A program made the translations under genes and the position numbers. Of a DNA stretch of 64,000 bases, positions 1 through 47,779 are shown one piece after another. The stretch is taken from positions 3,530,443-3,594,442 of the forward strand of contig NW_003314265.1 of the NCBI RefSeq assembly GCF_000143415.4, written 5' to 3'. This stretch comes from Selaginella moellendorffii. Lineage: Eukaryota > Plantae > Lycopodiophyta. The notes beneath the pieces were generated by a model. It worked only from the letters and a program-made list of their open reading frames with translations. It was not told the origin of the DNA and ran no database searches. Each line of letters opens with the position of its first letter. Positions within the stretch are counted from its first letter, which is position 1.

Positions 1-73
1 GGAGCTAAAGAGCTCCCTTCTCTCTCTCTCGTTATTTCTAGGTTTTTGTGGCGCCCGCGCGGAGCGATCGACC

Positions 74-1961: not shown

Positions 1962-2189
1962 GAGACACTTTCAGCAGCTGCAATAAATTCTTTTTGTTTT
2001 TACTTCTCCAATCTCGCAAGGCAAGCTCCCATGTTATCGATTTGATTCCAAGGAAATAATCCTGGCAACGATTCATCGCGTGGACAATGCAAGCGAGTGA
2101 CTCCATTCATTGGTTTGAGATGAGACTCTTCTTTTGTTCCTTAGATATATGATCAATATAAACTTACACAAAGAACCCTATTCGGTCAG

Positions 2190-8002: not shown

Positions 8003-8038
8003 TCCATCACCATCGAGCGTGTGACCGCTTGATGAAGA

Positions 8039-10579
8039 TCAATCTGCTCGTAGATGAATCCTTAAACTCTTCCTATCCGCTTTCAAGGCCGCCTCCTGTA
8101 TAGTCTTGAGCTTATCATGATCCTCCCACAGCCCCGCGCTCCGGTAGATGCTCGCCATCAGAACGTACGCAGCCGAGTCTCTCTCGTCGATCTTCGTCAG
8201 TGCCTCGAACGCAATCCTCCCCACTTCCACGTTCTTCCACTTACGGGAGGCCCCGAGGACGCTCCTCCAAACCACAGCGTCCGCTCTCAAAGGCATGCTC
8301 TCGAGGACTTTCACGGCCTCTTCCAGTCGGTTTGCACGCCCGAAGAGATCCACCAAGCTGCTGTAGTGATGAATCCCGCAAACAATGCCAGAGTCCGGGT
8401 CCATTGCCTGGAAAAACTCCCTGCCTCGTTCAACCAGGCCGCCGTGGCTGCAAGCAGTGATGACCGAGACAAACGTGATCGCGTTTGCTCGCACGCCATC
8501 TTCTCGCATCTCGCGAAAGGCTTTGAACACGCGCGACGTGTCACCCTGTTGGCCGAATCCTGTGATCATTGCATTCCAGGCGACGATATCTCGGACTGCC
8601 AGAGATCCAAACAAGTGCTCGGCCGCACTCATAACTCCGCACTTCCCGTAGAAGTTTACCATGCACGTCCCCACAACTTGGTCGTTTTCCAGCCCACGCC
8701 TGTAAAGCTCAGCCTGGATTTTCCTTCCAGCTTCACTGGACCCAACGTTCCCACAGGCCGTAAGTCCCGCTACAAGAGTCCGAGAGTTTGGAGCACAGTC
8801 CATGCTCTCCAAGAGTTCCAGCCCGAGCTCGCTCTCACCGTTGTCTACATATCCCTGGATCAAGCTCGTCCAAACGACAACGTCCCGGCTAGGCATGCGT
8901 TTGAAAACTGCTCGAGCTTTCACCATATCTCCACACTTGGCATACATGTCCACCAAGCTGCTCCCGACAAATCTGTGCTCACAGCATCCAAACTTCGTGG
9001 CGAGAGAATGAATCTCCATCCCCTTTTCTAGGCTCTGGATTCGCAGTAGCTTTCCATCTTCTCGCGGAACAGGTTGTTCGGACGCTGAAAGATGGACGCA
9101 GGCCATGAGCGCAGCAATAAACGTTCTCTCGTCCGGATCGTTCTCCCGAGCCATGCCGAAGAACAGCTCCAAGGCCAGCTTGCTGTCTCCACTTCCAACA
9201 GATCCCTGGATCATTGCGTTCCACGAAACCACGTCTCGGCCAGCCATGCCATCGAAGACCTTGCGAGCTTCCTCTAGCTTCCCACACTTCGCGTACATAT
9301 CGATCAATGTGTTCCCCACGAACACGTCCTCACAGCACCTGTTGTTTGAGGCTTCACCCTGGATAGCCACCCCAGTTTCCAAGCTCTTTCTCTTCACGAG
9401 TTTCCCGTCGACATCCACCGCTTCTTCTCGCATTGCCGAGCTCGCACAGGCGGCAAGCGCAGCAACATACGTTCGAGAGTTTGGACAGCACCCGGATAGC
9501 TTCATATCTTCGAAGAACACGAGAGCCAGCTCGCTTTCCCCGTTGTCCACAAAGCCTTGCATCAAGCTCGTCCAGAGCACGACATCACGACGAGGCATGC
9601 TCTCGAAAACCATCCGCGCGTCGGCCATGCTCCCACACTTCGAGTACATGTCCACAAGGCTGCTCCCCACGAAAATATCTCCATAGCAGTGGCTTTCCAT
9701 AGCTCCAGCGTGAACAGCGAGCCCCTTCTCCAGGCTCCTCGTCTTCACCATCTTTCCATATTCTTGAGTGGCCTCCTCTTTCACTGCTAGATTCGCACAG
9801 GCCCTGGCCGCAGCAACGAAAGTCCGAGAGTTTGGCGAACAGTCCATCTTCCCAAAGAACTCGAGGGCGACCTCGCTTTCTCCATTCTCTACGTAGCCCA
9901 GTATCAAAGCGTTCCAGGAGACCACGTCTCGCCGTGGCATCTCATCGAAGACCGATCGAGCATCGAGCATGCTGCCGCACTTGGAGTACATATCGATCAG
10001 CGAGCTCGAGAGGAAAACGTCTTCGCTGCAAGACGGTCCCATCTGCTTGGCTTGAGAGTGGATGCCTCTGCCGGTCTCGAGACTAGCCTCCTTGACGAGC
10101 TTCCCATCGACCAAAACAGCGTCTTCCTTCGCCGCGAGGCTGCTACAAGCCTTGGACGCGGCCATGAAGCTCCTGGAGTTTGGCTTGCAGCCCGACCGCC
10201 TGGCTTGCATCCTCTCGAAGAGATCCAGAGCCACATCGCTCTCGCCATTGGAGACGTAGCCCAGCATCAAAACGTTCCAGGACATCACGTTTGGGTGAAG
10301 AATGCTGTCGAACACGCGGCGGGAATCCTCCATGCTGCCGCATTTCGCGTACATGTCCACCAGCGCATTGACGACATGGATCCCCAGCTGCCTGCTCTCC
10401 GCCGCCTGGGCGTGGATCGCCTTGCCCTTGCGCAGATCCCTTATGCTGCCACATACCTTCAGCGCCGACACCAGCGCGGCCGCCTGCTGATCGGGCGCCC
10501 GCGGCGGCGCTGCCGAAGCTGGTGCGGCGCATCGAATCGCTGCCGTCGCCAAGCCGCGGAACAAGCGAACTCTTCCCAT
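8039..10579 (-). CDS. PLS-class PPR protein with E domain, no DYW
   Basis: Intronless ORF with P-L-S triplets (LVDMYAKCG...A.xVF; VVSWNA.I.GY) and E-domain motifs (HYSSLVDLFGRA, VWRSVLGA, AYVLMASIY). MGRVRLFRGLAT resembles an organellar presequence. The start could be slightly further upstream. Confidence 0.9.
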   Translation of the reverse strand: MGRVRLFRGLATAAIRCAAPASAAPPRAPDQQAAALVSALKVCGSIRDLRKGKAIHAQAAESRQLGIHVVNALVDMYAKCGSMEDSRRVFDSILHPNVMSWNVLMLGYVSNGESDVALDLFERMQARRSGCKPNSRSFMAASKACSSLAAKEDAVLVDGKLVKEASLETGRGIHSQAKQMGPSCSEDVFLSSSLIDMYSKCGSMLDARSVFDEMPRRDVVSWNALILGYVENGESEVALEFFGKMDCSPNSRTFVAAARACANLAVKEEATQEYGKMVKTRSLEKGLAVHAGAMESHCYGDIFVGSSLVDMYSKCGSMADARMVFESMPRRDVVLWTSLMQGFVDNGESELALVFFEDMKLSGCCPNSRTYVAALAACASSAMREEAVDVDGKLVKRKSLETGVAIQGEASNNRCCEDVFVGNTLIDMYAKCGKLEEARKVFDGMAGRDVVSWNAMIQGSVGSGDSKLALELFFGMARENDPDERTFIAALMACVHLSASEQPVPREDGKLLRIQSLEKGMEIHSLATKFGCCEHRFVGSSLVDMYAKCGDMVKARAVFKRMPSRDVVVWTSLIQGYVDNGESELGLELLESMDCAPNSRTLVAGLTACGNVGSSEAGRKIQAELYRRGLENDQVVGTCMVNFYGKCGVMSAAEHLFGSLAVRDIVAWNAMITGFGQQGDTSRVFKAFREMREDGVRANAITFVSVITACSHGGLVERGREFFQAMDPDSGIVCGIHHYSSLVDLFGRANRLEEAVKVLESMPLRADAVVWRSVLGASRKWKNVEVGRIAFEALTKIDERDSAAYVLMASIYRSAGLWEDHDKLKTIQEAALKADRKSLRIHLRAD

Positions 10580-10683
10580 CCATCGCAAGAACCCTAGATA
10601 TTTGCTAACATCGAATGACCATGAAGAACAATATGGCCTCACTAAACACCAGCTAGTAAGTACAGGACTACTTTTATAAGAAG

Positions 10684-12795
10684 CTACTTGATTTTCTTCT
10701 GTGCCTCAAAGGACAGGCTTTCGATCCCTTTGAGGGTGGCCTCATAGCTCCGTATCGTGGATGAGTGGCGATTCGAGGATGGTCTCTTCATCTCCGAGGT
10801 CGTGGGAAGCTTGAGTTGTAGCTTGCTTGTTTGGAGTGGGTTTTGAACCCCTCCCGGCTTGTAAACTTGGGCCTTGCTAAATGGCGACGCCAAAAGCCTC
10901 TGCTTGGAAGATGTCGTGAGCGATTGCTTGGACAGCTCGCCGGTTGCATCAGCCTGGGAAACGATGTATTTAGAACAAAAATGACAATGACAATGGTAAT
11001 CACTTACGCTGTCTTTGGTGCACAAGTCGTGAATTCGCCTCTTTGGCGGCTCCGGAGAGGTTAAGTTCCGGGACTTTGCAGCGTCTTGTTGGCCGGCTCC
11101 GGCGGCTAGCTTTGTTAGTCAGCAAAATCCAGTTTTGTAGAAAAGGAAGATTTACCTGCTGGCTTCTCAGCTTTGTTCACCAAGGCAGTTGCCTGGAATG
11201 GAGGGATTTAAGTTTACGAAAAAAGGAGCAAGATGAAAGATCAACGCATGCTTACTGGTAAACTTACTGGAGATTGCTGCTGTGCAGTGGCGAGCTGCCT
11301 CTTCAAAATGGTCCAGTCGAACATACAATCGTATGGATATCCTAGTATCAAAGATTGCCTTGTAATCAGAATTCATGAGCACAGAGAGCTTAGATACCCT
11401 CTCGGATGAAGAGATCGTGAAAGAGGCGCTTCAGGTAATTGTAGTCTGGCTTTTCCTCGAAGCGAAGAGCCCGGCAATAGTGTAGAAACGTTATAAATTC
11501 CGTTGGACATGACTTGCACAAAACCTGCAAAACTATGGCTTTTTGTCATTCACGTGAACTCGTGCAGCAAATGACAAACCTCAATGGGAGTTGAAATCTT
11601 CTTTGAGCTGATCCTATCGTACTTCTGTTTCTTGTTTCCTGCTTTCAGGCCTTGCCAAGGAAGACTGTTATAGCACACAAATAAATGAATAAGCTCCAGA
11701 AACTGCGTAAGAGGCTATGATCACCTTCCCCTCAAGAAGTAGAGTAGAACGTAACCAAGAGACTCAAGGTCATCCCTCCGGCTTTGCTCTGAGGAGGAAC
11801 CCGAGTTACAAAGCTGTGCTGAGGAACTGAACGTACCAATGCCAATATGAGTGTTGATACTGGCATATCTTGCAGTCCCTGTCAAGCTTTTGTCCTCCCT
11901 ATATCGTCAGCACCATGTATCGATCAACAAACATCGAGCTAAATGAATGAAAACGGGAGAAAAACGTACTTGCTAACCTGTATGAGATGTGTTGGTGAGT
12001 GTTTGGATCCCGATACTTCTTGGCGAGCCCAAAATCGATGATGAAAACCTGCAAGCAGCGTGGGAAGTCACCAAAACTTGCTTAAAGCGAAGAACTCAAG
12101 GGCTCACCTGGTTTGCTCGCTTGCCTCGGCCCATTAAAAAGTTATCAGGCTTCACGTCACGGTGAAGAAAGCTTTTGGAATGGACGAACTCCAGCCTCGA
12201 GATCTACACAAAAGTAGAAAGCCTTAGCAAAGATGAAAACAAAAAAATGCGGCCTCGTTACCATTTGGTCCGCTAGCATTAGAACCGTCTTGAGCGAAAA
12301 CCTCCGGTTGCAGAAGTTGAAAAGATCTTCCAAGCTAGGGCCAAGAAAATCAAGGACCAGCACATTGTAGTCACCCTCAACCCCAAACCATCTCAAACTG
12401 GGAATGCCAGCTGACAGAAAAAAGATCCGACTCCTTTAAGGTGACTTTTAAAGAACGATGGCTTCTGATTATCACGTACTTCCTCCTTGGAGACTCTTGT
12501 AAATTTTGGATTCGTATTGAAGCTGTGGATTCCTTGTTTTTGCATTTTCCTGAAGAGCAAGAGAACTTACAATGAGCACTCCTCGCGGAGACCTTGAACA
12601 GCAAAAAGTTTACCAATTTGACACCCACTTCTTCATGAGTTTGTACATGCGTTCCTTGGAGAAGAAAAAAAAAAGAAAGAAAAAAGTTTCGAAGCTTCAT
12701 CCACGCAAGCTGAGCCACTTACCCAAATAAATCTCCCCAAACGAGCCACTGCCAAGCTTCCGACCAAGCTTGTACTTGTTTGCGACTAGTTCCAT
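10684..12795 (-). CDS. Casein kinase 1-like protein (multi-exon)
   Basis: [85 protein letters not shown], and the plant CKL C-terminus GIESLSFE. Confidence 0.93.
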
Positions 12796-13265
12796 TGCAA
12801 AAACAAGCTAAATCGCCGCCACAGCTTCTCCTCAAGCGCATCCATCGCCAGAGATGGCTCTCGTCCATCTTTTCTTGTAGCTCAGAGGAGGAACCGCCAT
12901 AACCATACCTCCTGGATCGATTCCCCTTGCTCCAAAACACCAGAAAATCTCTCCCGCCACCATCACATTCTGTGAAACCCTAGAAAATGGGCGAGTGCTG
13001 CCACAATGGAACCATGGTCATTCCTGGCTTGTGCCTCCCGAGAGGAGGACGACACCCCGCTGGCGGGAATGGGACCGTCGATATCCTGCATTGGGCGGCC
13101 ACGATGCGCCATGTTTGAAATCTTAGCAACTACCCGGGAAGCTCCCTAGGGCTTGCGTCATAGAAGGGTTTTTACAGCTCCAAGCATATTCCTTGAATTG
13201 CTGACACGTGTTTTCTTCGTTTTGCCGTACCCCCATTTTAGGGTTCCTGGGGCAAGGAGAGAGCG

Positions 13266-14150
13266 ATGGATTCGGCAGCAGTGCACAGGATTGCAGGGTT
13301 TCTGTCTCTCGGCCGCGGGAATGGGTCGCATCCAGCAGCAGTGGGGCGCCAATCGTCGCTAGGGCGCGGAAGATCGTGCCTCGCAGCTTGCCGCAACGCA
13401 CGGTTCGCGGATCAAAGCCATGTCGTGTTCTACGCGCGGCCAAGGAAGCAGCGGCGCTCGGCGACCTCCAGCCCGCGCGGCTTCGCCGGTAAGTTTGAGA
13501 TGGCAACAGTGGACGACGAGTCCGTCCAGGAGGTGATCCGGCAGCTCGAGGAGCTCCAGCTCAAGGCCAAGGCTAAGAAGAAAGAGCTCAAATGCAAGAA
13601 GGAAAAGGAGAAGAAGCAGTCAGCGATGGCGGCGGGGCCGGCGATGAAGAAGAGGAAGAAGGAATCGTCGTCTTCGAGCTCGGAGTCTTCGGATTCGTCA
13701 GGTGGCGAGTGCGGTAGCAGCCGATTTGACATGAGCTTGCTCCGGGAGGAGCTGCGAGCAGCAGCCTCTCCAAGATCCATAATCGATGCTGTGGCCAGCG
13801 AAGCCTCTCTGGAACAAGTGAATGGGGGGAAATGCGTTCTAGCGCCGCCGGTTTGTGCGAGAGTGGAGGTTTGCACGGGTGGGAAGTGTCGAAAGGCCGG
13901 CTCTCAGCAAGTTTTAGCCGCGTTCCAAGCAAAGATCTCTTCTTCTTCCTCGCCTTCACTGTCTTCGGCAACTTCGTGTAAGTGTATGGGGATGTGTGGA
14001 CAAGGTCCCAATGTCCGGATCCAAGGAGCTGGCGATGGAGCCCCTTTGGCTTTCAATCACGTCGGTGTGGAAGACGTCGATCCCTTGCTCCAGCAGGCTG
14101 GATTCCCAGCCGTGGTAGCAGTAACGAGGATGCAAAGCGCCCGCTACTAA
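13266..14150 (+). CDS. DGAT3: Soluble diacylglycerol acyltransferase 3-like protein ([2Fe-2S] thioredoxin-like domain)
   Basis: K-rich coiled segment, SSSSSESSDS tract and C-terminal VEVCTGGKCRKAGS...CKCMGMCGQGPNVRI, typical of plant DGAT3. Confidence 0.8.
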   Translation: MDSAAVHRIAGFLSLGRGNGSHPAAVGRQSSLGRGRSCLAACRNARFADQSHVVFYARPRKQRRSATSSPRGFAGKFEMATVDDESVQEVIRQLEELQLKAKAKKKELKCKKEKEKKQSAMAAGPAMKKRKKESSSSSSESSDSSGGECGSSRFDMSLLREELRAAASPRSIIDAVASEASLEQVNGGKCVLAPPVCARVEVCTGGKCRKAGSQQVLAAFQAKISSSSSPSLSSATSCKCMGMCGQGPNVRIQGAGDGAPLAFNHVGVEDVDPLLQQAGFPAVVAVTRMQSARY

Positions 14151-14285
14151 GGTATTTGTTACTATTAAAATTTGTCACAAACTTATCTGACAATATTTGT
14201 TTTCTACAAAGTGCTTATAATAACCAAAGTTTAGTAGTGACAATAACTTCAGTTTTAATCCAGTCAATTTAGTGTTAATATTTTG

Positions 14286-14446
14286 GAGAGGGCCGCGCGT
14301 ACGCGAGCCCTCAACTTCCACAAATTACGACGTCCACTCCTCCACTTTGGGAAGATGGTAGGCTGGCCAAGCCAAAGTGCAATGGGAAAGCCAAACCTAG
14401 GCCATTGGCCTTCATGATCACCAATAGACCCCGTCCAGGTAAGTAT
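14286..14446 (-). ncRNA. U1: U1 spliceosomal snRNA (canonical copy)
   Basis: Starts ATACTTACCTGG. Contains loop I GATCATGAAG (U1-70K site), loop II ATTGCAC (U1A site), Sm site AATTTGTG and a terminal GC hairpin. About 161 nt. Confidence 0.95.
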
Positions 14447-14469
14447 GGATCCTTTCCCCAGGCCCTAGC

Positions 14470-14516
14470 TTATATACTGTTTTAGTGGCCTCAATCTACG
14501 CCCCGGCATGTGGGAT
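14470..14516 (-). promoter_or_regulatory. Plant snRNA promoter (USE + TATA) of U1 copy 1
   Basis: ATCCCACATGC (consensus RTCCCACATCG) at -70 and TATATAA at -30. Confidence 0.88.
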
Positions 14517-14616
14517 AGGTTTAATTCCACGTGGCAGCCCAATCCAGAGCCCTAACTTGACAGTTGTGACCGTTTAGGGCTTGTTTTGACTTGGAATTTC
14601 ATGAGATCTTTCTCGC

Positions 14617-15520
14617 TCAGTCCATTGTTGTTTGCATTGTTCCCTCGTCGTTCTCTTGTTGCGCGACCGACGCGTTCGTCCTTGCTTGCGTTGTTCCTTC
14701 TTGGTTTTCTTGAGCGAGAGGAGTGCCTGCTGTTGGTTGCGTTGATTCCTCCTCTTTGTTTTCTTGCGCCACCGCGTCGCCCAGTTTCTCGGTCTCGGCC
14801 CGCCTCTTCTTCATGAGCTCCAGGAACTTTTCCTTCTCCTCTGGAGTGGAATACTCGAGCGAGCAGTCGCCCACTCCCCACTCGGCTTGGCGCTCGCAGT
14901 ACTTGTCTTCAATCTCTTGCTTGCGCCTGGAAAGGTTTTCCGAAGTTCGCAAAGACGTACGAACCAAGAAGAGGACTTACTTGGCAGCGTTGTCCTTCGA
15001 TCGCTTGAGCAGCTCCTTGATCAGCGGGGAATTCTTCATGTTTGAGTCGAATTCTTCATACTTCTTTCTCTGTTTCTCTGGCGATGGAAGGGAGAAAACA
15101 AGAGAAAGAGAAACAAGAATCAAGGGGGAGATAAGAGCAAAATGTAAGACCTGAATTCTCTTTGAGCGAATCTGGGACCGAAATTTGGGGGAGCTGGAAG
15201 TCCCAGCCGCGATATCCAGAGAGAATTCCAGCTTGTGCTGCAATTATTTCGCGATAAGCAAGCAAGATCCTAAGAGAATGCGAAGAATTGTAAGCAAACG
15301 CACCTAAATCCGGGCAAGAAGCGCTCACTGAGAGCACCGAGAGAGGAACCATGGCGAGCTTCGCCATCGCCATCGGCAAACCGGAGCGCCTTGCGGAGGC
15401 GGATTCAGCACTGCAGATCGTTGCCGCAGCGGCATTTCTCCTGGCGCTACCGGAAACCTGGATGGAGGGCCTGGAGAAATCGATTGTGACGAGCTTGGCG
15501 CCTCCAAGCAGGAGCGACAT
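14617..15520 (-). CDS. PsaN-domain-like chloroplast protein (At1g49975-like), 3 exons
   Basis: Transit-like N-terminus, then spliced KYEEFDSNMKNSPLIKELLKRSK...EIEDKYCERQAEWGVGDCS...EEKEKF. Confidence 0.75.
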
Positions 15521-21633: not shown

Positions 21634-22715
21634 TAAGCCCCCGGAGAGCGAGTGACGCGGTCACTTACGCGCTACACCACCACGCGGACAACGCACGACC
21701 GCTTCCAGGGTGATATAATATGGATCCAGGAAGAGATACACAGCTTGGTTGATCATCGGCGATCACGCTAAAACTCTCCTGGAGTCCACGAGAGGCTGGA
21801 TGGATGATCTTGAGCTTGGGGGGCGACGCGCATTTACTCGGTCGTTGGAGAAGGCCAGAGGAAAAGCTTGTGATGTTCGCGAGGCTTCACCAACTTGGAT
21901 TTGGAGGCCGCCAGCCAACAAGTCACAGGGGTTCTTACACGGAAGTTTGGTTTGGATGGGTCAGAGAAGAACAGAAGAAAGAGAAGCTGGAGAGAAGTCA
22001 ATGGGCTCTTTGGACGCACACACGGAGAAAAGCTTGCAAGGGGAGAAATCGGCAAAAAACCAAGTCCATCCAGTTGGTGTGTGGGAGAGAGATATTGGAG
22101 GACTTCTAGGGTGTGGAGAGAATGGAAGATTTGGAAGCGTCAATGGGGACCCCTGTTTGGACACTGATCAAAGAATGCAAGGTTTCAAATAATTGTTGAT
22201 TTTAACCTGTGACTTTGCAAGTGGGCCCTTTTTTTTTTGTCATGTTGGTCTTTGGAGCTAGGCTTTTGGTTGGTTTTGGCTTGTAGTCTGATCCATGCAG
22301 TGTGATGTAAGCCTTGGAATCATCCGAAAGTGTGTGCTTCCACTCGTCACGGGTTATTCCTGGCGGTACTGTTAGTTTCTTTTTTCTCTGTTTTTTTTTT
22401 TTTTTTTGGTCCTCTTTTTTTCTCTTTCAGCCGAGTTCATGCTTTGGTCATTGGGACTGTTGGAGCGAATTGTTGCCGACTCACACACACGTGAAATAGT
22501 TCCAGATCCTCCTTATTCTAGAAGAGGCGATCTATGAAAATACATGAACAAAAGCATGCAGTAGATAGATCAAACCTTTCTCTCTTTTCGATTTGCTTTA
22601 GTCCTTTTTCCCGCTTCTTCGTCTTCAGACTCATCTTCATCTTCAGACTCAGATTCATCCACAGGCTCGGGATTTAAATCGATTGGGTCTTCCTCTTTGT
22701 CCTCTACTCCATTGG

Positions 22716-33500: not shown

Positions 33501-33748
33501 CGCCTCGATAAACCCTAAGAACTGGGAATATTTAGGGCATGGAAACGATTAGAGCCAGTGCTTTGATCGCCTCTTTGATCGAAGAATGGCGCAGCATATG
33601 GCGACTTCTAAAATCCTCAATGTGGACTGAAGCTCTCCAGGCGAAAAGGAAACGATCGAAAGCCTTGTTTCTCAAAAAACATTCGAAAGTTCTTTTTGTC
33701 TCCAACAGTTGTTAGGTTTTTTGACCAAAGGATCCTGGAATTAAACCT

Positions 33749-33795
33749 ATCCCACATGCCGGGGCGTGGATTGAGGCCACTAAAACGGTATATAA
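33749..33795 (+). promoter_or_regulatory. Plant snRNA promoter (USE + TATA) of U1 copy 2
   Basis: ATCCCACATGC at 33749 and TATATAA at 33789. About 85 bp upstream is nearly identical to the copy-1 promoter. Confidence 0.88.
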
Positions 33796-33818
33796 GCTAG
33801 GGCCTGGGGATAAGCTCC

Positions 33819-33970
33819 ATACTTACCTGGACGGGGTCTATTGGTGATCATGAAGGCCAATGGCCTAGGTTTGGATTTCCCATTGCACTATGGCTTGGCC
33901 AGCCTACCATCTTCCCAAATGGACGTCGTAATTTGTGGAAGTTGAGGGCTCGCGTACGCGCGCCCCTCTC
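33819..33970 (+). ncRNA. U1: U1 snRNA variant (9-nt deletion in stem-loop III)
   Basis: ATACTTACCTGG start, loops I and II and the Sm site are intact. Lacks GTGGAGGAG relative to copy 1. Confidence 0.88.
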
Positions 33971-34199
33971 CAAATCAAAGTTCCAAAATAGTAAATCTAT
34001 GACTGGGATCAAAGTATGATCCTTTGTTAGGTTTCATATAGGTCAGAGAGAGTTTTCGTTGCGATGGAAGATTGAGCGATGCGCAGGGGGCACGGGGAGG
34101 AAGAGAGCGTTCGAGTGATGCGAGAGGCACCGCGCTGCTCTCAAGGCGTGCGCGGGGCTGGCGTTCAAAGAAGAGTCTCAGGGCAGAGGCCAAACCGTG

Positions 34200-34570
34200 C
34201 GGGGATTGGCTACTTTACTTCTGTTCTCGTGTTACTTTTCTCGTCGCTCTCAAGGCTTGCTCTAGCTGCGAAAGACGAAAGTATGAAGATCAAGGCTCTG
34301 CCCAAGGCGCGAGAATCCACTCCGATGCTGCGAACCGGGACGTTTTCGTCTTGAATGCTCTGGTGGACATGTATGGCATGGTGGACGCTGGCCGACAGGA
34401 TGCCTTGGGATACGCACAGAATGGCGATGGCGAAGAAGCTCTACTGCTGTTTGCGGTCATGCAGGACGAGGGATGTCTTCCGGGTTCTCCAGCTTTCGTG
34501 ACTGCATGACAGGCTTGGCTGCCTCGCGGAGAGCGAAGAGTGGATGGATGAAGATGAAGGCTTTGGATGT
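34200..34570 (+). pseudogene. PLS-PPR pseudogene fragment
   Basis: VTFLVALKAC, DVFVLNALVDMY, GYAQNGDGEEALLLF..MQDEG, with internal deletions, frameshifts and a stop at 34507. Confidence 0.75.
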
Positions 34571-34941: not shown

Positions 34942-37900
34942 ATGTGGAAGCTCCATGTCGCCAGCGGTGGCGATTCTTCTTCCGCCACGCCACTCAGCAC
35001 TCTCAACGATCTCGTCGGCCGCCAGATCTGGTGCTACGACGAGGCCCTCGGCAGCGACGAGGATCGCGCGCGCGTCCAAGAGGCTCGGGATCACTTCGCC
35101 AAGAATCGCCATGTCCACAAGCACAGCTCCGATCTCCTCATGCGAATGCAGGTATGCTGGTGGAATTCCTGATTTTCGAATCTCCAATCTTTCTTCTCTT
35201 CTCGCATAGCTCTCCAAGGCTGCACAGCCGCTGCCCCAAATCCCTCCTCCAGTGAAGGTCCAAAGCGATGCGGAGATCAAGCAGAGCGATGTCGAGACCA
35301 CGATTCGTCGTGCCTTGCGGTTTTACTCCACGATTCAAGCCGAGGACGGTCACTGGCCTGGCGATTACGGAGGTCCCATGTTTCTCATGCCGGGATTGGT
35401 ATGAGCTTATCTTTGGGATTTCTTACATGCCAAACGATGGTGTATTATCAGATCATTGCTTTGTACGTCACTGGAGCGATCAACGTGGTTTTGTCACCGG
35501 AGCACCACCGAGAAATGTGTAGATACTTTTTCAATCACCAGGTGTGTAATCTTTCTTTCTAGCGATGTTCGTGAATTTTTTGTCTTTCTGGAAGAACGAA
35601 GATGGCGGCTGGGGATTGCACATTGAAGGGCACAGCACGATGTTTGGCACTGTACTTGTTTATGTTTCTCTACGGCTACTTGGCCAAGAACCAGACAAGC
35701 CGGCCATGAAGAGCGCCCTTTCATGGATTTTTGGTCATGGAGGGACTATCGCCATTCCGTCCTGGGGAAAGTTTTGGCTCGCGGTACGTGAAGGAAAATT
35801 CAAGTTGTTTCTTTGTTATTGACGATAACCTGTCTCTGTAAGGTTCTTGGAGTGTTCGATTGGTCGGGAGTTAATCCCCTACCGCCAGAAATGTATTTGC
35901 TGCCGTATGCGATTCCCCTTCATCCAGGTATCTCCTTAATTATTTGTTCTCTACGTATGCTCAAAGTTTTCTTTAGGACGTATGTGGTGTCATTGCCGGA
36001 TGGTTTATCTTCCTATGAGCTATATCTATGGTCGTCGTTTCACTGGAAAAATCACACCCAAGGTCGAAGCTCTGAGAAAGGAGCTCTTTAACGGACCCTT
36101 TGAAGACGTGGATTGGAATCGTGCGCGAAATAGTTGTGCAAAGGTAAAATTTTCTGCGCACCCGAGAAGGATGCATTTATTTTTATCAGCTTACAGAAAG
36201 CATTTCTTGATGACTGGTACGCAGGAAGATCTGTATTATCCTCATCCGCTCATACAAGATGTTCTTTGGGGAGTTTTGCATAAAGGTGTGGAGCCTCTTT
36301 TAATGCGTTGGCCAGGATCATTGCTGCGCAAAAAGGCGCTTGATACGGTTCTCGAGCATATCCACTACGAGGATGTCAATACGAGATATATATGCATTGG
36401 GCCTGTTAACAAGGTGGGAATCGTTTTGCTCCTCTATCTATTTAGTTTATTGTTCCACTCAGGTCATCAACATGCTTTGCTGTTGGGCGGAGGACCCAAA
36501 CTCCGAAGCTTTCAAACAGCACTTGCCCCGAATTCATGATTATCTCTGGGTTGCGGAAGATGGGCTGAAAATGCAGGTAAAAGGATTTTTAGATAATTTT
36601 TTTTTTCTATTTGTTACGTAACCAAGAAACATATAAGGGATACAATGGCAGTCAACTTTGGGATACAGCTTTTGCTGTACAAGCGATCATATCAACGGAT
36701 ATGCTTGAAGAATCCCGGGAGATGCTGAAGAAAGCTCATTCCTACATAGAAAAATCACAGGTTTGTAACAAGAATCACTATACGTTGGTTATCACGATCT
36801 TCCTCCCAAAGGTACGCGAAGACTGTCCCGGGGATTTGGACTATTTCCATCGACATATATCAAATGGAGCATGGCCATTTTCTAACAGAGATCACGGATG
36901 GCCTATATCGGATTGTACTGCTGAAGGCTTGAAGGTATTATCGACCATTGGGGTATCTACATTCTGATGGATCATTCTTTTGTAGAGTGTGTTGCTACTA
37001 TCCCGCATTTCATCGGACGTTGTTGGGAAGCCCTTATCTCCGGAACGGCTTTATGATTGCGTTAATATGCTCATTTCCTATCAGGTACAATACTTTTCCC
37101 CTTGGATAAGTTGGCCGATAACTCGTGAAATCAGAACGCTAATGGAGGAGTCGCAACATACGAATTGACACGTTCATATGCTTGGATCGAGGTGAGATGA
37201 AAGGATGGATTTTAAGTGATAACTTGTCGAAATTGCAGCTGTTCAACCCTTCAGAAACATTTGGGGACATAACAATCGATTACTCGTAAGAACTACAGCT
37301 ATCTAAGTACGCTCTCTAAGCGTGCGTTTGGTCTTTTTCTAGCTATGTGGAATGTACATCAGCTTGCGTTCAGGCGCTCTGTGCTTTCAGCAGGCTCTAC
37401 CCTGACCATCGGTCCAAGGAAATCGAGCTATTTGTGGCCAAAGGATGCCAATATATTGAAAGCATTCAAAGACCTGATGGCTCCTGGTAAGCTTGTGTTC
37501 TTTTTTCTATTCTCATACGTTTTTAAGGTACGGGTCATGGGGTGTTTGTTTCACGTACGGCATCTGGTTTGGAGTCCTGGGCTTGGTTGCCGCTGGCAAA
37601 AGCTATAAGCACTCTGCAGCAATCCGCAAGGCCTGCGATTTCCTTGTTTCTAAGCAGCTCCCATCAGGTGGCTGGGGTGAGAGCTACCTCTCCTCTCAAA
37701 ACAAGGTGTGGCTAATTTTCTCTTTCTCGTGATACATGTAAGCTTCCCTCCTTTGCAGGTTTATATGAACCTGGAAGGTGGTAAGCACCACCTCGTTAAC
37801 ACGGCCTGGGCGATGCTAGCGCTTATTGCAGGTGGACAGGCAAGTCTAGACAATTTAGTTTCAGAAATGTTTTGGTTTCAAAATGTTTCTCTCTTTATCT

Positions 37901-38166
37901 TGTTTAGGCTGAAAGAGATTCCACGCCTCTGCATAAAGCCGCTGCTCTTTTGGTAAACGGACAGCTTGAAGATGGCGATTTTCCACAGGAGGTACGTAAT
38001 GCTTACATATGGTTTTTCCGTCACCTTGTTTGCTTCTTTCTTGCAGGAAATAATTGGAGTGTTTAACGGCAACTGCATGATCAGCTACTCCGCCTACAGG
38101 TGTATCTTCCCAATCTGGGCACTCGGACAATACCGCAGCCGCGTGCTCAAGCGTCCAGCAAAGTGA
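34942..38166 (+). CDS. CAS1: 2,3-oxidosqualene cyclase, cycloartenol synthase-type (copy 1, multi-exon)
   Basis: [55 protein letters not shown] repeats, FPIWALG. The CAS-diagnostic His, Tyr, His and Ile are all present. One GC-AG intron at 37840. Confidence 0.93.
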
Positions 38167-38251
38167 TGGATTGATCTCGTCTTATTAGTTTCCGGCAACA
38201 CATAACATAAAGCACCATTCCATCGCTTCGCAAAAATTCTCCCGACGGAAA

Positions 38252-40241
38252 TCACAGCTCGTCTTTAGAAGGCTCGCCGGCGTCCGGTGTCGCCGAAGGA
38301 GCAGCCGAGGTTCTGTGCTTGTCAACGAAGCTGATCAAATCCTCCTTGCTTCGATCGCCCTCGTACTTGACGGCTTGCTTGGCGCCCGTGTAGAGGTAGA
38401 GCGTGGGGAAGCCCTGGACGTCAAACGTTTCGTCTTCAATGTCGTTGGCAGTGGCATCCTGCGTAGAGGAAAGAAAGAGACTGGTTACTTACGAAAGCAA
38501 CGCAACTGTGCAAGAAAACTCACCAGTTTCGCGATGACGACCTTGGGATCATCCTTGAAGTGTTCCGCGACTTCGTCCAGCGTGGGCGCCAGTTTCTTAC
38601 AGTGGCCACACCACGGCGCGTAGAATTCCAAAAGAACTGGAGGTACGAATAAATGTTAGTAGAGTGTAAACTATAACGTGGTTATGTTCTTGTGCATTAC
38701 CATCTTTCCCAGACTCGATAACGAGGTCGTTCAAAGTGTTCCTCACCACCACTTTGACTGGTTCATCGTTTTTCTCGGGAACGGGCTCGGACTTCACCCA
38801 CGGCTTGAGCTTTCCAGCCTGTGTCCAATGTCAAGTGTAAGAGAAAATGTGAGCGTCCGTGAGAGAACTTACCAAATAGTCGTCCACAAAACTGGATAGC
38901 TTTGATGATTCGATCGTCTCTACTGCGAACTTTTTCCCTTGTGCGTCTTGTACAACAATGGACGGCAGCTTTGCAGCTGCAAGACCAAAGTGCTGCACAA
39001 AAGGAAAGATTTAAGAATGTGAGGATACCAAATTAGAATTAGCAGACCTGAAGAGCATGGTCGTTTCCTGCGCTGTTGGCAGCAAGGAAAAGAAGGCCTT
39101 TTGGTTTGTTTGACTCTGCAACCTTCTTGTAAGCAGGTCGATATTCTTCGTCATGGCTCGACTCGACAAACAGAAACACCTATCCTCCCCAGAAAAAGGT
39201 AAACATCAATCCAAACATTGAGAAAACAAAACCTTTGGCGCCTCCTTGTTGAAAAACTTCATTAGAAACGGCTGCATTTCGGGGTCCTGATTCAGCTCGG
39301 TCACAAGAGGCAAGCTCGATTCCTCCACAAACTTTTTGAGCTCCTCGACATAGAAATTCTAAGAAGGTGGCGTTAAGCAAGATAGATGGCAACCAGTCAG
39401 AGCTTACCGTGAAGTCGTTAAAACGTTCGTCGAAAACCTTGAACAGCCTGACTGCCGGAGCTTTCAGTGGCTCGTCCTTCAGAGGCAGCACGGAAGCGTC
39501 CAGTGTGTGACGAAAGTCGTACTCAGATCTGAGCGCTTCCGCGAGAGCCGTGAAGTTTTGGAACTCTTCGCTATCATAAGACTTAAAAACTCCAATCTGG
39601 AAGAGAGTCAAGCAAAAAAGAATTTTGAGCTTCAAAACTTACAATAGCTATCTTGTTCTGTCCAACGAAATCTCCAGCCTCTTCAGTAGAAGTTAGCTCC
39701 ACTGTGGCTGGCCCGGCTTGTTTCTTCAAGTAGCTCACAATGCCATCTGCGTCGCGCGGCCCCTTGTACTCCTCCACGGTCCCCTTGCGAATGATCTTCA
39801 AGGTGGGGAAACCCCGGATCTCATAGTCCGACGCAATCTTCTTGTTCTTCTCCTCGTTCGCGTCTACTTTGGCCAAAACGATGTTGTGTTCTTTCAGTGC
39901 GGTCGCCGCCTTCTCGTACTGGAGTAAAAGAGCAAATCAATAGTTAGTTCTGCGCTGCGAAGAGGAGAATAATCTCACCTCGGGAGCTAGCTTCTTACAG
40001 TGCCCACACCTGTCAATCGAAATATCAGATTAGCCATCATCAGCGAGACGCCAGTGATCGATCGAACTTACCAGGGCGCGTAGAACTCGACGACGATGAA
40101 GTCGTGCTTCTTGATCTCGTCCGCGAAGTTGGAGTCGTCGAGCTCAAGAACATCGCTGCTCTCGCTCGACGCATCGATGACTCTGGCAGCAGTGACCGCC
40201 AGCAGCGCAAGCGCCAGGAATACCACTCCCTCTCGCGCCAT
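38252..40241 (-). CDS. PDI: Protein disulfide isomerase (PDIL1-type, ER)
   Basis: Signal peptide, two [15 protein letters not shown] sites, GFPTL, KSEPVPE and C-terminal KDEL. Confidence 0.95.
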
Positions 40242-40545
40242 GGAAATGATCCAATAACAAAGCCCTAGGCGAGAGCTTAAAACCCCACACAGAACAGGAA
40301 CTGTGTACGATGTGTACGAACGGCTAGATTGCCGCTTAGCCATGCAATGCGGGAATCGTAGCCGTCCATCTGGTCATGACATGGCAAAGAGCTTCCTTTG
40401 CGTACACGTGGCATTCATCGGTTGGGCACTTGACGTGCAAGGCAGCCACATTATTCACGTTTTTGCTGACGTGGACGTTTATTAGAATATGCTGAAGAGA
40501 TCCTGTTCTTGCCTGATTAGGGCAAAGAAGCATTTTCTCATTTTT

Positions 40546-41289: not shown

Positions 41290-42214
41290 TCATATGACCG
41301 AGCAGGGAGGATCCGAGTGGAGCGTGAAGCTGTACACATAGCCATCCGACTCGACCCTCAGCTCGGTGGCGAACATCTGGAAGTTGTTCCCGAAGAAAGA
41401 GTGGCCGAGGACAAAGTCGTGGCGGGAGAACTTCATCACGGCAAAGTCCATCCGGCCCATGTACCCGCCATCGATCTCGAACTCGAGCTTCGGAGCCACC
41501 AAGTTGCCGGTATAAGTACTGGTTCCCAGCGGTGTCTCGACGCTAAACTCCGTGCACTCCTCCGTTCGCAGGCCGAGGCGGGACACGGCGCTCTCGGACA
41601 CGAAGTTGTCGGAGCTGTTGCTGGCCACGAAGCTGACCGTGTGCCCGTTCACTCTCCCGCGCTGCCATTTCCCGAAGTCGTCGTCGCCGGAGTACACCAC
41701 AAAGTGGAGCTTCACGTCCTTCTTTGGAGCGCTCGGCGGCTGCTCCTCCTTCTTTGGAGGTAAGGCCACGAAACTCTGGTAGTAGCGAGCTGTCAGGGGT
41801 GGTGTTTCTTTCGGCTTTGCCTCGGCAGCGGCCTTTGCGGCCCTCTCCGCCTGGAGCGCCAGAGTTATGGCCTCCTGCAAGTTCCTGGGCTTCCTCAAGT
41901 TGACGAAGTTTGCCAGCGGCGGGTTGAGACCCGAGATGTACCGGTTGAGCTTGCGCGAGTCGAGAAAGTTATCGGTGTATTCTCCGACTGAGAGCTCCTT
42001 CTGTTTGATCGCAGTGGCAGCGTCATCGCCAGCGGCGCACGGCTTGAAGCAGCGAAGTATGAGATTCTTGAAATCCTCCCAGGTGGTGGTGGCGGCACCG
42101 TCCTGGTGGTGAAGAGCTCTCCACTTGGCGTGGGCGGGGCCTGTGAGATAGTTTGCCGCATAGAGAATCTTGTGGCTGTCCTCGTGGATGGCGACTGTGT
42201 TAAAGAAGCACTTG
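41290..42214 (-). mobile_element. Ty3/Gypsy-derived gag + aspartic-protease-like ORF (no RT/integrase)
   Basis: Stop-free frame: KILYAANYLTGPAHAKW...TWEDFK...IKQKELSVGEY...YISGL...PRNLQEAI (gag), then GRVNGHTVSFVASNSSDNFVS...HDFVLG (retropepsin fold with DSG lost). Confidence 0.8.
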
Positions 42215-42932: not shown

Positions 42933-43470
42933 GTAGAATTGATTGATGGCACATTTAATGAAGAAACTCTATTAACAAATCTCTACCCCAAATTACCGAA
43001 AAGCTGCAAAGATTGGTATGCCAACAATGGTTTGAGTTATGACAGACTGTGTTAAGCTTTGGATCATTATGCAAAAGCTATAAATTACAACAGTTCTAAT
43101 ACATATGAAAGCTTTAGTCAAGATAATGATAGTTCACCAGCAATATCTTGACAGTTCAGCAGTAGTATCTTGATAATTTAGAAGTTGTCAGCTGAGATTG
43201 CTGAGTTTTGGAAGAAAAGAATCTTCTCTCTCTCTATACATATATAAAACTTTTACAGTCCACTTCCACTAGTGCCAATCTGGGGCTTTGAGTAGTAGAT
43301 ATATAAATGAAGAACTTTAATTTGAATCCAAAGTTGTTGTATAATATGCTTGCCCAAGCAAACAAATTTGCAGTAGAGATGATACTATCAACGAAGACAT
43401 TCACTATTGGTAGCTTCTTACACATGATGGACACGTCAGGGGTGGGAGTCCATTCCCCAGAAGAACGATG
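42854..43470 (+). mobile_element. Decayed hAT-like transposase C-terminal fragment
   Basis: AT-rich frame with several stops, containing EIAEFWKKR...LY..IKLLQSTSTSA, similar to the hAT dimerisation domain (FWK...L...LL.iP.TSA). Confidence 0.5.
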
Positions 43471-43543
43471 AATCAGTGAAAGTGGTGATCGAGCCTGGGG
43501 AAGACGGTACATCTGTTTTTGATAAGCGCACGTTTTGTTTCAG

Positions 43544-43656
43544 GATGCCACTGCATATTGAAGAAGACATGTTTGACTTCCAGGGCTTCCCACGCTCTCC
43601 CTCGAGCGGCCACCACAACACTGGACGGCGGCGAGCCAGCTAAAAACGAGCTGTGA
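43544..43656 (+). pseudogene. Decayed duplicate of the last PDI exon
   Basis: cagGATGCCACTGCA...TTTGACTTCCAGGGCTTCCCACGCTC...GGCGAGCCAGCTAAAAACGAGCTGTGA is the inverted copy of PDI 38252-38458 ([17 protein letters not shown]->KNEL), with frameshifts and an internal deletion. Confidence 0.85.
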
Positions 43657-43688
43657 TTTCATAGGTAAAATTTTAGCAAAGCGATGCT

Positions 43689-46600
43689 TTATGTGTCATG
43701 GTTTATGTGTTGCTGGAAACTAATAGAAGACTCAATTGCTGGACGCTTGAGCACGCGGCTGCGGTATTGTCCGAGTGCCCAGATTGGGAAGATACACCTG
43801 TAGGCGGAGTAGTTGATCATGCAGTTGCCGTTAAACACTCCAATTATTTCCTGCAAGAAAGAAGAAAACAAGGTGACGGAAAAACCATATGTAAGCATTA
43901 CGTACCTCCTGTGGAAAATCGCCATCTTCAAGCTGTCCGTTTACCAAAAGAGCAGCGGCTTTATGCAGAGGCGTGGAATCTCTTTCAGCCTAAACAAGAT
44001 AAAGAGAGAAACATTTTGAAACCAAAACATTTCTGAAACTAAATTGTCTAGACTTGCCTGTCCACCTGCAATAAGCGCTAGCATCGCCCAAGCCGTGTTA
44101 ACGAGGTGGTGTTTACCACCTTCCAGGTTCGTGTAAACCTGCAAAAAAGAGAAGCTTACATGTATGACGAGAAAGAGAAAATTAGCCACACCTTGTTTTG
44201 AGAGGAGAGGTAGCTCTCACCCCAGCCACCTGATGGGAGCTGCTTGGAGAGAAGGAAATCGCAGGCCCTGCGGATCGCTGCAGAGTGCTTATTGCTTTTA
44301 CCAGAGGCAACCAAGCCCAAGACTCCAAACCAGATGCCGTACGTGAAACAAACACCCAATGACCCGTACCTTAAAAACGTATGAAAATAGAAAAAAGAAT
44401 ACAAGCTTACCAGGAGCCATCAGGTCTTTGAATGCTTTCAATATATTGGCATCCTTTGGCTACAAATAGCTCGATTTCCTTGGACCGATGGTCAGGGTAG
44501 AGCCTTCTGAAAGCACAGAGTGCCTGAACGCAAGCTGATGTACATTCCACATAGCTAGAAACAGAACGTTAAGAGAGCATACTTAGATAGATAGCTCTTA
44601 CGAGTAGTCAATTGTTATGTTCCCAAATATTTCTGAAGGGTTGAACAGCTGCAATTTCGACATGTTATCACTAAAAGCCAACACAGCATCCTTTCATCTC
44701 ACTTCGATCCAAGAGTATGATCGTGTCAGCTCGTATGATGCGACTCCTCCACTAGCGTTCTGCTTTCGCCAGTTAGCGGCGAACTCGTCCAAAGAGAAAA
44801 GTTTAGTACCTGCAATGAAAGGATCAGTTTGACGCAATCATAAAGCCGATCCGGAGATAAGGGCTTCCCAACAACGTCCGAGGAAATGCGTGATAGAAGC
44901 AACACACACTATAACAGAATGTTCCATCAGAAGGTAGATAGCTCAATAGTCGACAATACCTTCAAGCCTTCAGCAGTGCAATCCGGTACAGGCCATCCGT
45001 GATCTCTGTTGGAAAATGTCCATGCTCCATTTGAAATATGACGATGAAAATGCTTCAAATCCCCGGGACAGTCTTCGCGTACCTTTGGGAGGACGATCGT
45101 GATAACTAACGTATAGGGATTCTTGTTACAAACCTGTGATTTTTCTATGTAGGAATGAGCTTTCTTCAGCATCTCCCCGGATTCTTCAAGTATATCCGTT
45201 GCTATTATCGCTTGTACAGCAAAAGCTGTATCCCAAAGTTGACTGCCATTGTATCCCTTATATGTTTCTTGGTTACGTAACAAATAGAAAAAAAAAAAAT
45301 CTAAAAATCCTTTTACCTGCATTTTCAGCCCATCTTCAGCAACCCAGAGATAATCATGAATTCGGGACAAGTGCTGTTTGAAAGCTTCGGAGTTTGGGTC
45401 CTCCGCCCAACAGCAAAGCATGTTGATGACCTGAGTGGAACAATAAACTAAATAGACAGAGGAGCAAAACGATTCCCACCTTGTTAACAGACCCAATGCA
45501 TATATATCTCGTATTGACATCCTCGTAGTGGATATGCTCGAGAACCGTATCAAGCGCCTTTTTGCGCAGCAATGATCCTGGCCAATGCATTAAAAGAGGC
45601 TCCACACCTTTATGCAAAACTCCCCAAAGAACATCTTGTATGAGCGGATGAGGATAATACAGATCTTCCTGCATACCAGTCATCAAGAAATGCTTTCTGT
45701 AGTTGATAAAAATAAATGCACCCTTCTCGGGTGCGCAGAAAATTTTACCTTCGCACAACTATTTCGCGCACGATTCCAATCCACGTCTTCAAAGGGTCCG
45801 TTAAAGAGCTCCTTTCTCAGAGCTTCAACCTTGGGTGTGATTTTTCCAGTGAAACGACGACCGTAGAGATAGCTCATAGGAAGATAAACCATCCGGCAAT
45901 GACACCACATACGTCCTAAAGAAAACTTTGAGCATACGTAGAGAACAAATAATTAAGGAGATACCTGGATGAAGGGGAATCGCATACGGCAGCAAATACA
46001 TTTCTGGCGGTAGGGGATTAACTCCCGACCAATCGAACACTCCAAGAACCTTACAGAAACAGGTTATCGTCAATAACAAAGAAACAACTTGAATTTTCAT
46101 TCACGTACCGCGAGCCAAAACTTTCCCCAGGACGGAATGGCGATGGTCCCTCCATGACCAAAAATCCATGAAAGGGCGCTCTCCATGGCCGGCTTGTCTG
46201 GTTCTTGGCCAAGTAGCCGTAGAGAAACATAAACAAGTACAGTGCCAAACATCGTGCTGTGCCCTTCAATGTGCAATCCCCAGCCACCATCTTCGTTCTT
46301 CCAGAAAGACAAAAAATTCACGAACATCGCTAGAAAGAAAGATTACACACCTGGTGATTGAAAAAGTATCTACACATTTCTCGGTGGTGCTCCGGTGACA
46401 AAACCACGTTGATCGCTCCAGTGACGTACAAAGCAATGATCTGATAATACACCATCATTTGGCATGTAAGAAATCCCAAAGATAAGCCCATACCAATCCC
46501 GGCATGAGAAACATGGGACCTCCGTAATCACCAGGCCAGTGGCCGTCCTCGGCTTGAATCGTGGAGTAAAATCGCAAGGCACGACGAATCGTGGTCTCGA

Positions 46601-46931
46601 CATCGCTCTGCTTGATCTCCGCATCGCTTTGGACCTTCACTGGAGGAGGGATTTGGGGCAGCGGCTGTGCAGCCTTGGAGAGCTATGCGAGAAGAGAAGA
46701 AAGATTGGAGATTCGAAAATCAGGAATTCCGCCAGCATACCTGCATTCGCATGAGGAGATCGGAGCTGTGCTTCTGGACATGACGATTCTTGGCGAAGTG
46801 ATCCCGAGCCTCTTGGACGCGCGCGCGATCCTCGTCGCTGCCGAGGGCCTCGTCGTAGCACCAGATCTGGCGGCCGACGAGATCGTTGAGAGTGCTAAGG
46901 GGGGCCGCGGAAGAAGAATCGCCAGCGCTGG
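43689..46931 (-). CDS. 2,3-oxidosqualene cyclase copy 2 (inverted duplicate with altered active site; start codon lies in the gap)
   Basis: Same exon structure as copy 1. DCTAE and MWCHCR are retained, but it has [24 protein letters not shown] and SEIFGN. C-terminus is extended by about 14 aa. Confidence 0.9.
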
Positions 46932-47063
46932 NNNNNNNNNNNNNNNNNNNNNNNNNNNNNNNNNNNNNNNNNNNNNNNNNNNNNNNNNNNNNNNNNNNNN
47001 NNNNNNNNNNNNNNNNNNNNNNNNNNNNNNNNNNNNNNNNNNNNNNNNNNNNNNNNNNNNNNN
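46932..47063. other. Assembly gap (N run)
   Basis: Run of n characters that covers the first codons and proximal promoter of OSC copy 2. Confidence 1.
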
Positions 47064-47779
47064 GCAATGACTTTTGGACCACATGGCGTATTACTCAAAT
47101 ATTATAATGTATACATATAGGTAATATCGACGTAACTCATTTTTACCAGTGAGACTTGAGCTGTGGCTAAAATGCAATCCTAGATACCCATGGTACTTTT
47201 CCATTTTGCTTAATTGTTTATGGGCATGTGTGTTGGAGTCCCGAATTTCTCGTCAACTTGCGGTGGTTGGTTGGCATTGTTCTTTTGTAAATTCAAAACC
47301 AGGAATCTGTACTGTCTTGAACACTTCTATTCATCTTACTAACATACTTCAGGATTCTTCTCATCATGTCTTCAGGTTTAGCACTCTGCCTTTTTTGCAC
47401 TTATTTAGATAGTGTTACCCTAGTGTATATTCTTGTTTTATTTAAAGAATTTTGAGCTCTTCTCTTTTGGCGGCTACTTTTAGGCGGATGGATTGGATTT
47501 TGCAAGAATGTGGCTTAAATACTTCACTTTTGACTTTGCAAATTTATATTTGCTCTTTTTCATAACTTCTAAGAGCGACTAGAAATATAAGAACAAGTGA
47601 TATCACATGAGTGCTTCTTCGTAGGCACCATGCTATCAAACAACACATTCCATATATGTATGGCAATCAATTTTTCCTCTGGCTCTGCCCCATGCAACCT
47701 GGCAACCACGAACTACGAAATAGAAACCTTTAACGTTTTAAGGTTGCAGAATTTATTTTCCAAACAAGCTTAGAATTTT

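Follow-up and report, generated by a model that had tools for sequence, protein, structure and literature searches.

Within a 64,000-nucleotide (nt) stretch of the Selaginella moellendorffii genome (contig NW_003314265.1 of RefSeq assembly GCF_000143415.4, positions 3,530,443 to 3,594,442; hereafter the window, with positions counted from its first letter and the strand in brackets), motif scans and blastn comparison of two regions revealed a pair of genes for cycloartenol synthase (CAS)-like oxidosqualene cyclases (OSCs), inverted and tail to tail. Our data support the second of these, copy 2, being a real, intact-looking and transcribed paralogue rather than a pseudogene. Beyond this, we see about an even chance that it is a genuine transcribed CAS-type paralogue in an old inverted duplication, containing a block spared by gene conversion, whose enzyme would make cycloartenol mixed with lanosterol and/or parkeol.

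An earlier note on this DNA, prepared from the letters alone, had described a duplicate OSC gene next to a parent-type copy, and a blastn alignment of the two copies (94.5% identity over 3.3 kb, introns counted in) bears this out. Using open frames, GT/GC-AG sites and continuity of frame, copy 1 was modelled as 18 exons at 34942-38166 (+) encoding 762 residues, with an N-terminus reading Met-Trp-Lys-Leu. The exon coordinates of copy 2 were carried over from this model by alignment. Its visible part, 46931-43689 (-), also has 18 exons, the first cut by an assembly gap at 46931: exons 1-9 lie at 46931-46741, 46682-46494, 46440-46351, 46297-46109, 46049-45965, 45915-45749, 45668-45480, 45430-45317 and 45256-45134, and exons 10-18 at 45082-44960, 44908-44810, 44759-44703, 44648-44602, 44554-44411, 44369-44192, 44138-44058, 43989-43906 and 43850-43689. 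Introns in the window are about 50 nt long. Relative to copy 1, the copy 2 exons contain no indels and 17 of 17 splice sites (donor and acceptor) are retained, in agreement with the earlier statement that no frameshift was seen; residues 8-762 form an open frame. The spliced models differ by 37 residue replacements in 755 comparable residues. Intron 16 is of the GC-AG type in both copies (donor GCAAGT; 37840-37907 (+) and 43990-44057 (-)), and its use was confirmed by spliced contigs from three runs.

Profile searches assigned the copy 2 exon pieces to the OSC family, with matches to TIGR03463 (E 1e-14 to 1e-24), PF13249 and PF13243; the scores lie below the full-length cut-offs solely because the pieces were searched apart. 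Copy 2 has the catalytic Asp in DCTAE, matches the OSC profile and contains both squalene-cyclase domains, N-terminal and C-terminal. All eight motif pairs listed in the earlier note were found in the sequence. In copy 1 (+) we located IGPVNK (36396-36413), GAWPFS (36866-36883), DCTAE (36911-36925), ATYE (37153-37164), SETFGD (37251-37268), GSWGVCF (37532-37552) and CMISY (38074-38088), and in copy 2 (-) their counterparts IGSVNK (45480-45497), GAWTFS (45011-45028), DCTAE (44969-44983), ASYE (44730-44741), SEIFGN (44619-44636), GSLGVCF (44345-44365) and CMINY (43809-43823). The motif scan also found MWCHCR and GYNGSQ identical in both copies, so that the catalytic motifs are unchanged, as had been claimed. 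What that note had missed are the lost parental stop, the block-wise divergence of exons and introns alike, T534S as a residue discriminating CAS from lanosterol synthase (LAS), and the Trp read at L613 in four runs, all of which are described below.

Our residue numbers equal those of Arabidopsis CAS1 (AtCAS1) plus 3. In alignments to Protein Data Bank (PDB) structures, the Asp of DCTAE corresponds to D455 of human lanosterol synthase (LSS) and V484 of copy 2 to V453, two residues ahead of it; the Ile-to-Val change equivalent to AtCAS1 I481V that the earlier note had pointed out is therefore present, and so is the equivalent of T531S. The codons of V484 and P485 (AtCAS1 I481V and S482P) lie directly before the catalytic Asp at 44984-44989 (-), that of T474 (AtCAS1 P471T) at 45017-45019 (-), beside the Phe equivalent to human LSS F444, and that of S534 (AtCAS1 T531S) at 44736-44738 (-), beside Y535 (AtCAS1 Y532, human Y503). 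Conservation at these sites was counted in CAS-like fragments obtained by word searches with the copy 2 open reading frames, which admitted only proteins of 0.55-1.75 times the query length and so returned fragments only; the best identities were 56-77%, and Selaginella was not represented. Ile stands at position 484 in 52 of 64 such fragments; position 485 is Ser in 60 of the 64 and Pro in none; position 474 is Pro in 57 of 64, and Thr there is typical of amyrin/lupeol-type OSCs in our signature table. S485P, N520K, T552I and D555N of copy 2 all fall at strongly conserved sites.

Copy 1 carries the full cycloartenol synthase signature (Y413, H480, I484, T534 and Y535). Of the signature residues Y410, H477 and I481 in AtCAS1 numbering, copy 1 has all three, whereas copy 2 keeps the Tyr and the His and has Val at 481. 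Both residues of the plant lanosterol synthase pocket, V481 and S531, are present in copy 2 (V484 and S534), whereas the lanosterol-type second shell, N/Q477 and G469, is absent from it, H480 and A472 being kept. These two pocket residues, 481 and 531, separate cycloartenol from lanosterol producers; in AtCAS1, I481V by itself yielded significant lanosterol and left residual cycloartenol, T531S by itself changed nothing, and H477N switched the enzyme fully to lanosterol (bioRxiv 10.64898/2026.05.26.727834). A mixed product at most would therefore be expected of copy 2.

The earlier note had also counted a Trp-to-Leu change in the GxWG motif among the signs of re-tooling. The Leu codon is indeed in the window: L613 (TTG, 44357-44359 (-)) occupies the position of W581 of human LSS by PDB alignment, which is Trp in copy 1 and other OSCs, so the conserved cation-stabilising Trp of the family is not kept in the window's copy 2. 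Of 52 fragments, 49 have Trp at position 613, and the three that do not include at least one, P0165, in which read-through of an intron was misaligned. However, contigs from all four public sequencing runs examined (described below) read C at 44358, giving TGG and hence Trp, and the window's A occurs in none. As contigs drop minority variants, and a heterozygous plant would carry L613 in one of its four gene copies, its absence from the contigs is no proof against it; at best, L613 is private to this haplotype, and it may instead be a base-call error. In Ilex, W612F left IaAS1 with no products and shifted the product ratio of IaAS2 (PMC6678101). If real, L613 would thus probably damage the window's allele, with weaker or abolished activity, and not tune it, which weakens the re-tooling part of the claim.

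Differences between the two copies are not evenly spread. Substitutions amount to 12.9% in a block of about 0.5 kb at 44565-45058 (-), spanning exons 10-13 and introns 10-13 (36836-37324 in copy 1), versus 2.4% outside it, and a two-breakpoint scan gave this block a chi-square of 114.8, a value reached by none of 300 permutations. Within the block, exons are 11.0% and introns 12.2% diverged; outside it, the figures are 2.3% and 2.5%. Since the introns of the block are as diverged as its exons, the block is best read as old divergence spared by conversion and not as a focused burst of protein change. Together with a dN/dS (ratio of nonsynonymous to synonymous divergence) of 0.30 in the block, this weakens the earlier picture of a clustered, re-tooled active site.

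Further information on age comes from a neighbouring gene. An intact protein disulfide isomerase (PDI) gene ending in KDEL lies convergent with copy 1 at 38255-40343 (-), and a decayed remnant of its 3' part flanks copy 2 at 43334-43725 (+), in four pieces with 68-86% identity to 38183-38958 and with half of the length deleted. The inverted duplication took in this 3' part, which has decayed beside copy 2 while the adjoining OSC is intact. Using the remnant as a same-age neutral control for the duplicated OSC, we found that its raw divergence of about 21% matches the block dS of 0.27. In our reading, the duplication would be old, with both ends of the OSC arms homogenised by gene conversion and the central block left unconverted. 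In the DNA run X1, contigs carry copy 1 letters at many copy 2 positions outside the block and show mixed patterns in exon 15, which suggests that conversion tracts differ between haplotypes.

Comparison of the copies indicated that the coding sequence has been under constraint. Over the whole coding sequence their dN/dS is 0.26 (Fisher p 6e-9), for the block alone it is 0.30 (p 7e-4; 95% range about 0.16-0.57), and neither comparison gave a signal of positive selection. No indels occur in 2270 exon nt versus four events in 943 intron nt (P ~0.008 even when one lineage only is counted). The replacements were polarised against a consensus built from 111 CAS-like fragments that the word searches had returned; two plant OSC loci had been considered as a near outgroup and were rejected, as they come from other plants, have longer introns and share 75-80% exon DNA identity. 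Derived replacements at conserved sites number 14 in copy 2 versus 3 in copy 1 (p 0.013). Copy 2 therefore appears to be constrained yet the faster-evolving arm.

As no single public run contained more than 44% of the sampled copy 2 31-mers, and 41% of copy 2 31-mers are common to copy 1, contigs of four public runs (X1, DNA; X4, X6 and X18, cDNA-type) were aligned to 43300-46931. The DNA run yielded a 555-nt contig over the block (44532-45086) with 7 differences from copy 2 and 65 from copy 1. Its depth was 518 versus 498 in unique flank, and stretches identical in both arms had about twice that depth, a pattern weakly consistent with a true duplication. In X4, X6 and X18, the joints of spliced contigs matched 13 of the 17 predicted introns, the GC-AG intron among them, and these runs are thus cDNA. 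All three contain copy-2-type contigs over exons 10-12, where copy 1 transcripts are too diverged to align, in two allelic forms. One form equals the window sequence (e.g. X6 record 17: 179 nt, 0 differences, intron 11 retained), and the other carries the X1 variants and has intron 11 spliced out. Three studies therefore show copy 2 to be transcribed, with its RNA spliced at least in part. Copy 1 is transcribed as well, as seen from a 1423-nt spliced copy-1-type contig in X18. The intron 11 read-through contig of X6 (44703-44881 (-)) could reflect allele-specific intron retention, pre-mRNA or DNA carry-over.

At the 5' end of copy 2, an assembly gap of 132 N (46932-47063) hides the first 19 nt of the coding sequence and the 5' boundary of the duplication, and the start codon is predicted to lie within the gap or just past its edge. 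OSC proteins start with Met-Trp. An ATG TGG at 47079-47084 (-), directly upstream of the gap, is a candidate start, offered as a lead only; were it the start of copy 2, the 132-N gap may in truth be much shorter than drawn. This ATG TGG has ACATTATAATATTT before it, and copy 1 has ACATTAGAATATTT 16 nt ahead of its own ATG TGG. Copy 2 DNA upstream of the gap showed no significant similarity to the copy 1 upstream region by blastn-short or by Smith-Waterman alignment (score 23 vs 17.9 ± 2.5 for shuffles). At the 3' end, the position matching the end of the copy 1 coding sequence is 43731. An 11-nt indel at the stop has removed the parental stop codon (*763E), adding 14 codons before a new stop at 43689-43691. 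Over 43689-43740 (-), one X1 contig skips 48 nt (43691 to 43740), which means either a polymorphism at this end or a difference between the arms.

To account for these results, we propose that an old inverted duplication took in the OSC gene and part of the neighbouring PDI gene, and that gene conversion then homogenised most of the OSC arms (to 2.4%) while sparing the 0.5-kb block with roughly its original divergence. Copy 2 would have been held by purifying selection while evolving faster than copy 1, and within that block it has I481V and T531S, both lanosterol-type, along with P471T and S482P, with Y410 and H477 kept. Such an enzyme should still form the protosteryl cation by protonating and cyclising 2,3-oxidosqualene, and a smaller side chain at position 481 may leave the final deprotonation less tightly controlled. 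We would expect it to make cycloartenol mixed with lanosterol and/or parkeol, and no new scaffold. A bolder form of this proposal, which we consider doubtful, is that the Trp613 allele of copy 2 makes lanosterol and/or parkeol with or instead of cycloartenol, independently of the eudicot enzymes, and that selection for that function bars conversion from the active-site exons.

Several observations weigh against the proposal of a conserved enzyme with a mixed product. H477, the stronger determinant, is unchanged in copy 2, as are Y410 and A469, and since T531S alone is inert in AtCAS1, copy 2 may make plain cycloartenol; S482P and W613L might even inactivate the enzyme. The start codon is unseen, and the DNA past the gap lacks homology to the promoter of copy 1. 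The RNA support consists of contigs, which can neither quantify expression nor exclude intron retention, and one window-type contig does keep intron 11. The upper dN/dS bound of about 0.57 leaves room for a neutral copy 2 beside a tightly constrained copy 1, although the missing exon indels argue against neutrality. Polarisation relied on a consensus of distant fragments with no close outgroup, and conversion from copy 1 could hold the frame open outside the block.

These points bear on two readings in which copy 2 has no altered product. It may be a redundant or sub-functionalised cycloartenol synthase, kept for dosage or its pattern of expression, with active-site differences that are near-neutral. 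Retention of Y410, H477, Y532, DCTAE and MWCHCR, the constraint indicated by dN/dS of 0.26-0.30, the inertness of T531S alone, and an upstream region that is unlike that of copy 1 and would permit different regulation all fit this reading. We nonetheless think it unlikely, since I481V by itself led AtCAS1 to make significant lanosterol, conserved positions show 14 derived changes in copy 2 and 3 in copy 1, and a Pro by the catalytic Asp is found in none of the 64 CAS-like fragments. A copy 2 that is recently disabled or decaying, at least in the window's allele, and that looks intact mainly through gene conversion from copy 1, seems rather improbable to us. W613L at a site where 49 of 52 fragments have Trp, considered with the loss of IaAS1 products in W612F, would be expected of such a gene, as would S485P, N520K, T552I and D555N, the lost stop codon, the unseen start and the window-type contig that retains intron 11. 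However, the unconverted block has a dN/dS of 0.30 with no indels or stops while the same-age PDI remnant is half deleted, the splice sites are all intact, copy-2-type spliced RNA occurs in three studies, and L613 was seen in no run.

Two further readings lie at the extremes. Mutants of OSCs and squalene-hopene cyclases that lack a cation-stabilising aromatic residue can terminate cyclisation early, and lycopods have recruited CAS-like OSCs for onocerin. It is conceivable on these grounds that copy 2 is a neofunctionalised triterpene synthase whose scaffold would be clearly different, either partly cyclised or built from dioxidosqualene, as the earlier note had suggested in view of the Trp change; enzymes of the amyrin/lupeol type likewise have T474 and V484. 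This would surprise us, as L613 is unconfirmed by contigs, Y413 and Y535 are of the protosteryl type, unlike the F/W of dammarenyl-type enzymes, Pfam scans found no P450, UGT or acyltransferase neighbours, and there is no positive-selection signal. An assembly error, in which a haplotype or a collapsed repeat was put in the wrong place beside the gap and so mimics a second copy, is hardly credible. The inverted copy does stop exactly at the N gap, and the assembly holds both haplotypes, but the arms are 12.9% apart in the block whereas haplotypes differ by 2-3%, an independent DNA run has the copy 2 block at unique-flank depth, the decayed PDI remnant flanks copy 2 as a true duplication predicts, and both allelic forms of copy 2 occur in RNA runs.

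Among known systems, a close parallel to copy 2 is the Arabidopsis CAS1 I481V mutant, which it resembles in family, length, motifs and retention of Y410 and H477, carrying the equivalent of I481V naturally. The mutant makes cycloartenol and lanosterol, and work by Hart and colleagues in 1999 is said to have found parkeol as well; copy 2 departs from it through the 36 other replacements that separate it from copy 1, among them P471T, S482P, T531S and, in the window's allele, W613L. With the plant lanosterol synthases of eudicot group F, such as AtLSS, copy 2 has V481 and S531 in common, whereas LAS-type fragments have Asn/Gln at 477 and mostly Gly at 469, where copy 2 keeps His and Ala. In structural alignments to human LSS (PDB 1W6K) and a plant OSC (8J5Z), exon 10 of copy 2 aligns to the Asp455 region and exon 15 to 579-588, which includes W581; both of those enzymes have the Trp, whereas the window's copy 2 has Leu.

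A recent survey calls the group F lanosterol synthases eudicot-specific (PMC12858397), and any lanosterol activity of copy 2 would therefore have originated independently. The same survey reports a bloom of group A (CAS-like) OSCs in Selaginella, with a mean copy number of at least 4 (Nat Chem Biol 2025, PMC12858397). Copies 1 and 2 belong to this class, as CAS-like OSCs of an early-diverging land plant; for these genes the survey, in the text consulted, offers counts and describes neither function, active site nor conversion structure. The doubled haplotypes of the S. moellendorffii assembly may inflate such counts. Copy 1 had been called the housekeeping parent, and it is a canonical, expressed CAS-type gene, although its status as parent is weakened by the Selaginella bloom and by its own derived residues. 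Some Selaginella species contain pentacyclic triterpenes, and S. moellendorffii is without OSC genes of the seed-plant type (review, PMC3650682). As Selaginella makes sterols and some unusual triterpenes with only CAS-like OSC genes, any specialised cyclase it has must derive from a CAS. The literature searched yielded no functional characterisation of a Selaginella OSC. Copy 2 is a plausible candidate for an altered product and an uncharacterised addition to the known OSC family.

The pair amounts to a compact natural experiment, in which a canonical arm can be set against one with lanosterol-linked residues while the rest has been kept near-identical by conversion. It bears on how few natural substitutions shift the product outcome of an OSC, and on whether selection is able to shield active-site exons from conversion. 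Should copy 2 yield only cycloartenol or be dead, the pair would be an ordinary tandem duplicate.

The S. moellendorffii assembly holds both haplotypes, and the window can be placed within it. A PPR gene at 2398-5025 has 98% identity to an S. moellendorffii protein encoded on the scaffold GenBank GL377663.1, and window positions 13-15202 are colinear with that scaffold (499810-522605) at 96.7-97.7% identity, so the window is the other haplotype of the GL377663.1 locus. The allelic OSC pair is expected at about GL377663.1:468-480 kb. Colinearity is interrupted by a small inverted piece at about 5327-5499 of the window.

Pfam scans of the neighbours identified PPR, LRR, glutaredoxin, peroxidase, GT47, PDI, a retroelement fragment and a Vps62/VPS13-like gene; since they contained no P450, UGT or acyltransferase, a biosynthetic gene cluster was rejected. 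A retroelement fragment lies in the 5-kb spacer that separates the OSC arms: the open frame at 41293-41898 (-) encodes an aspartyl protease domain of retroviral type (RVP_2, E 1e-4). Directly upstream of copy 1 are degenerate PPR-like open frames (34042-34506 (+)). Finally, 249 nt near 33736-33975 match a piece of the GL377663.1 locus (21875-22123 of 499810-522605) at 91.6% identity in inverted orientation, and are therefore a dispersed repeat.

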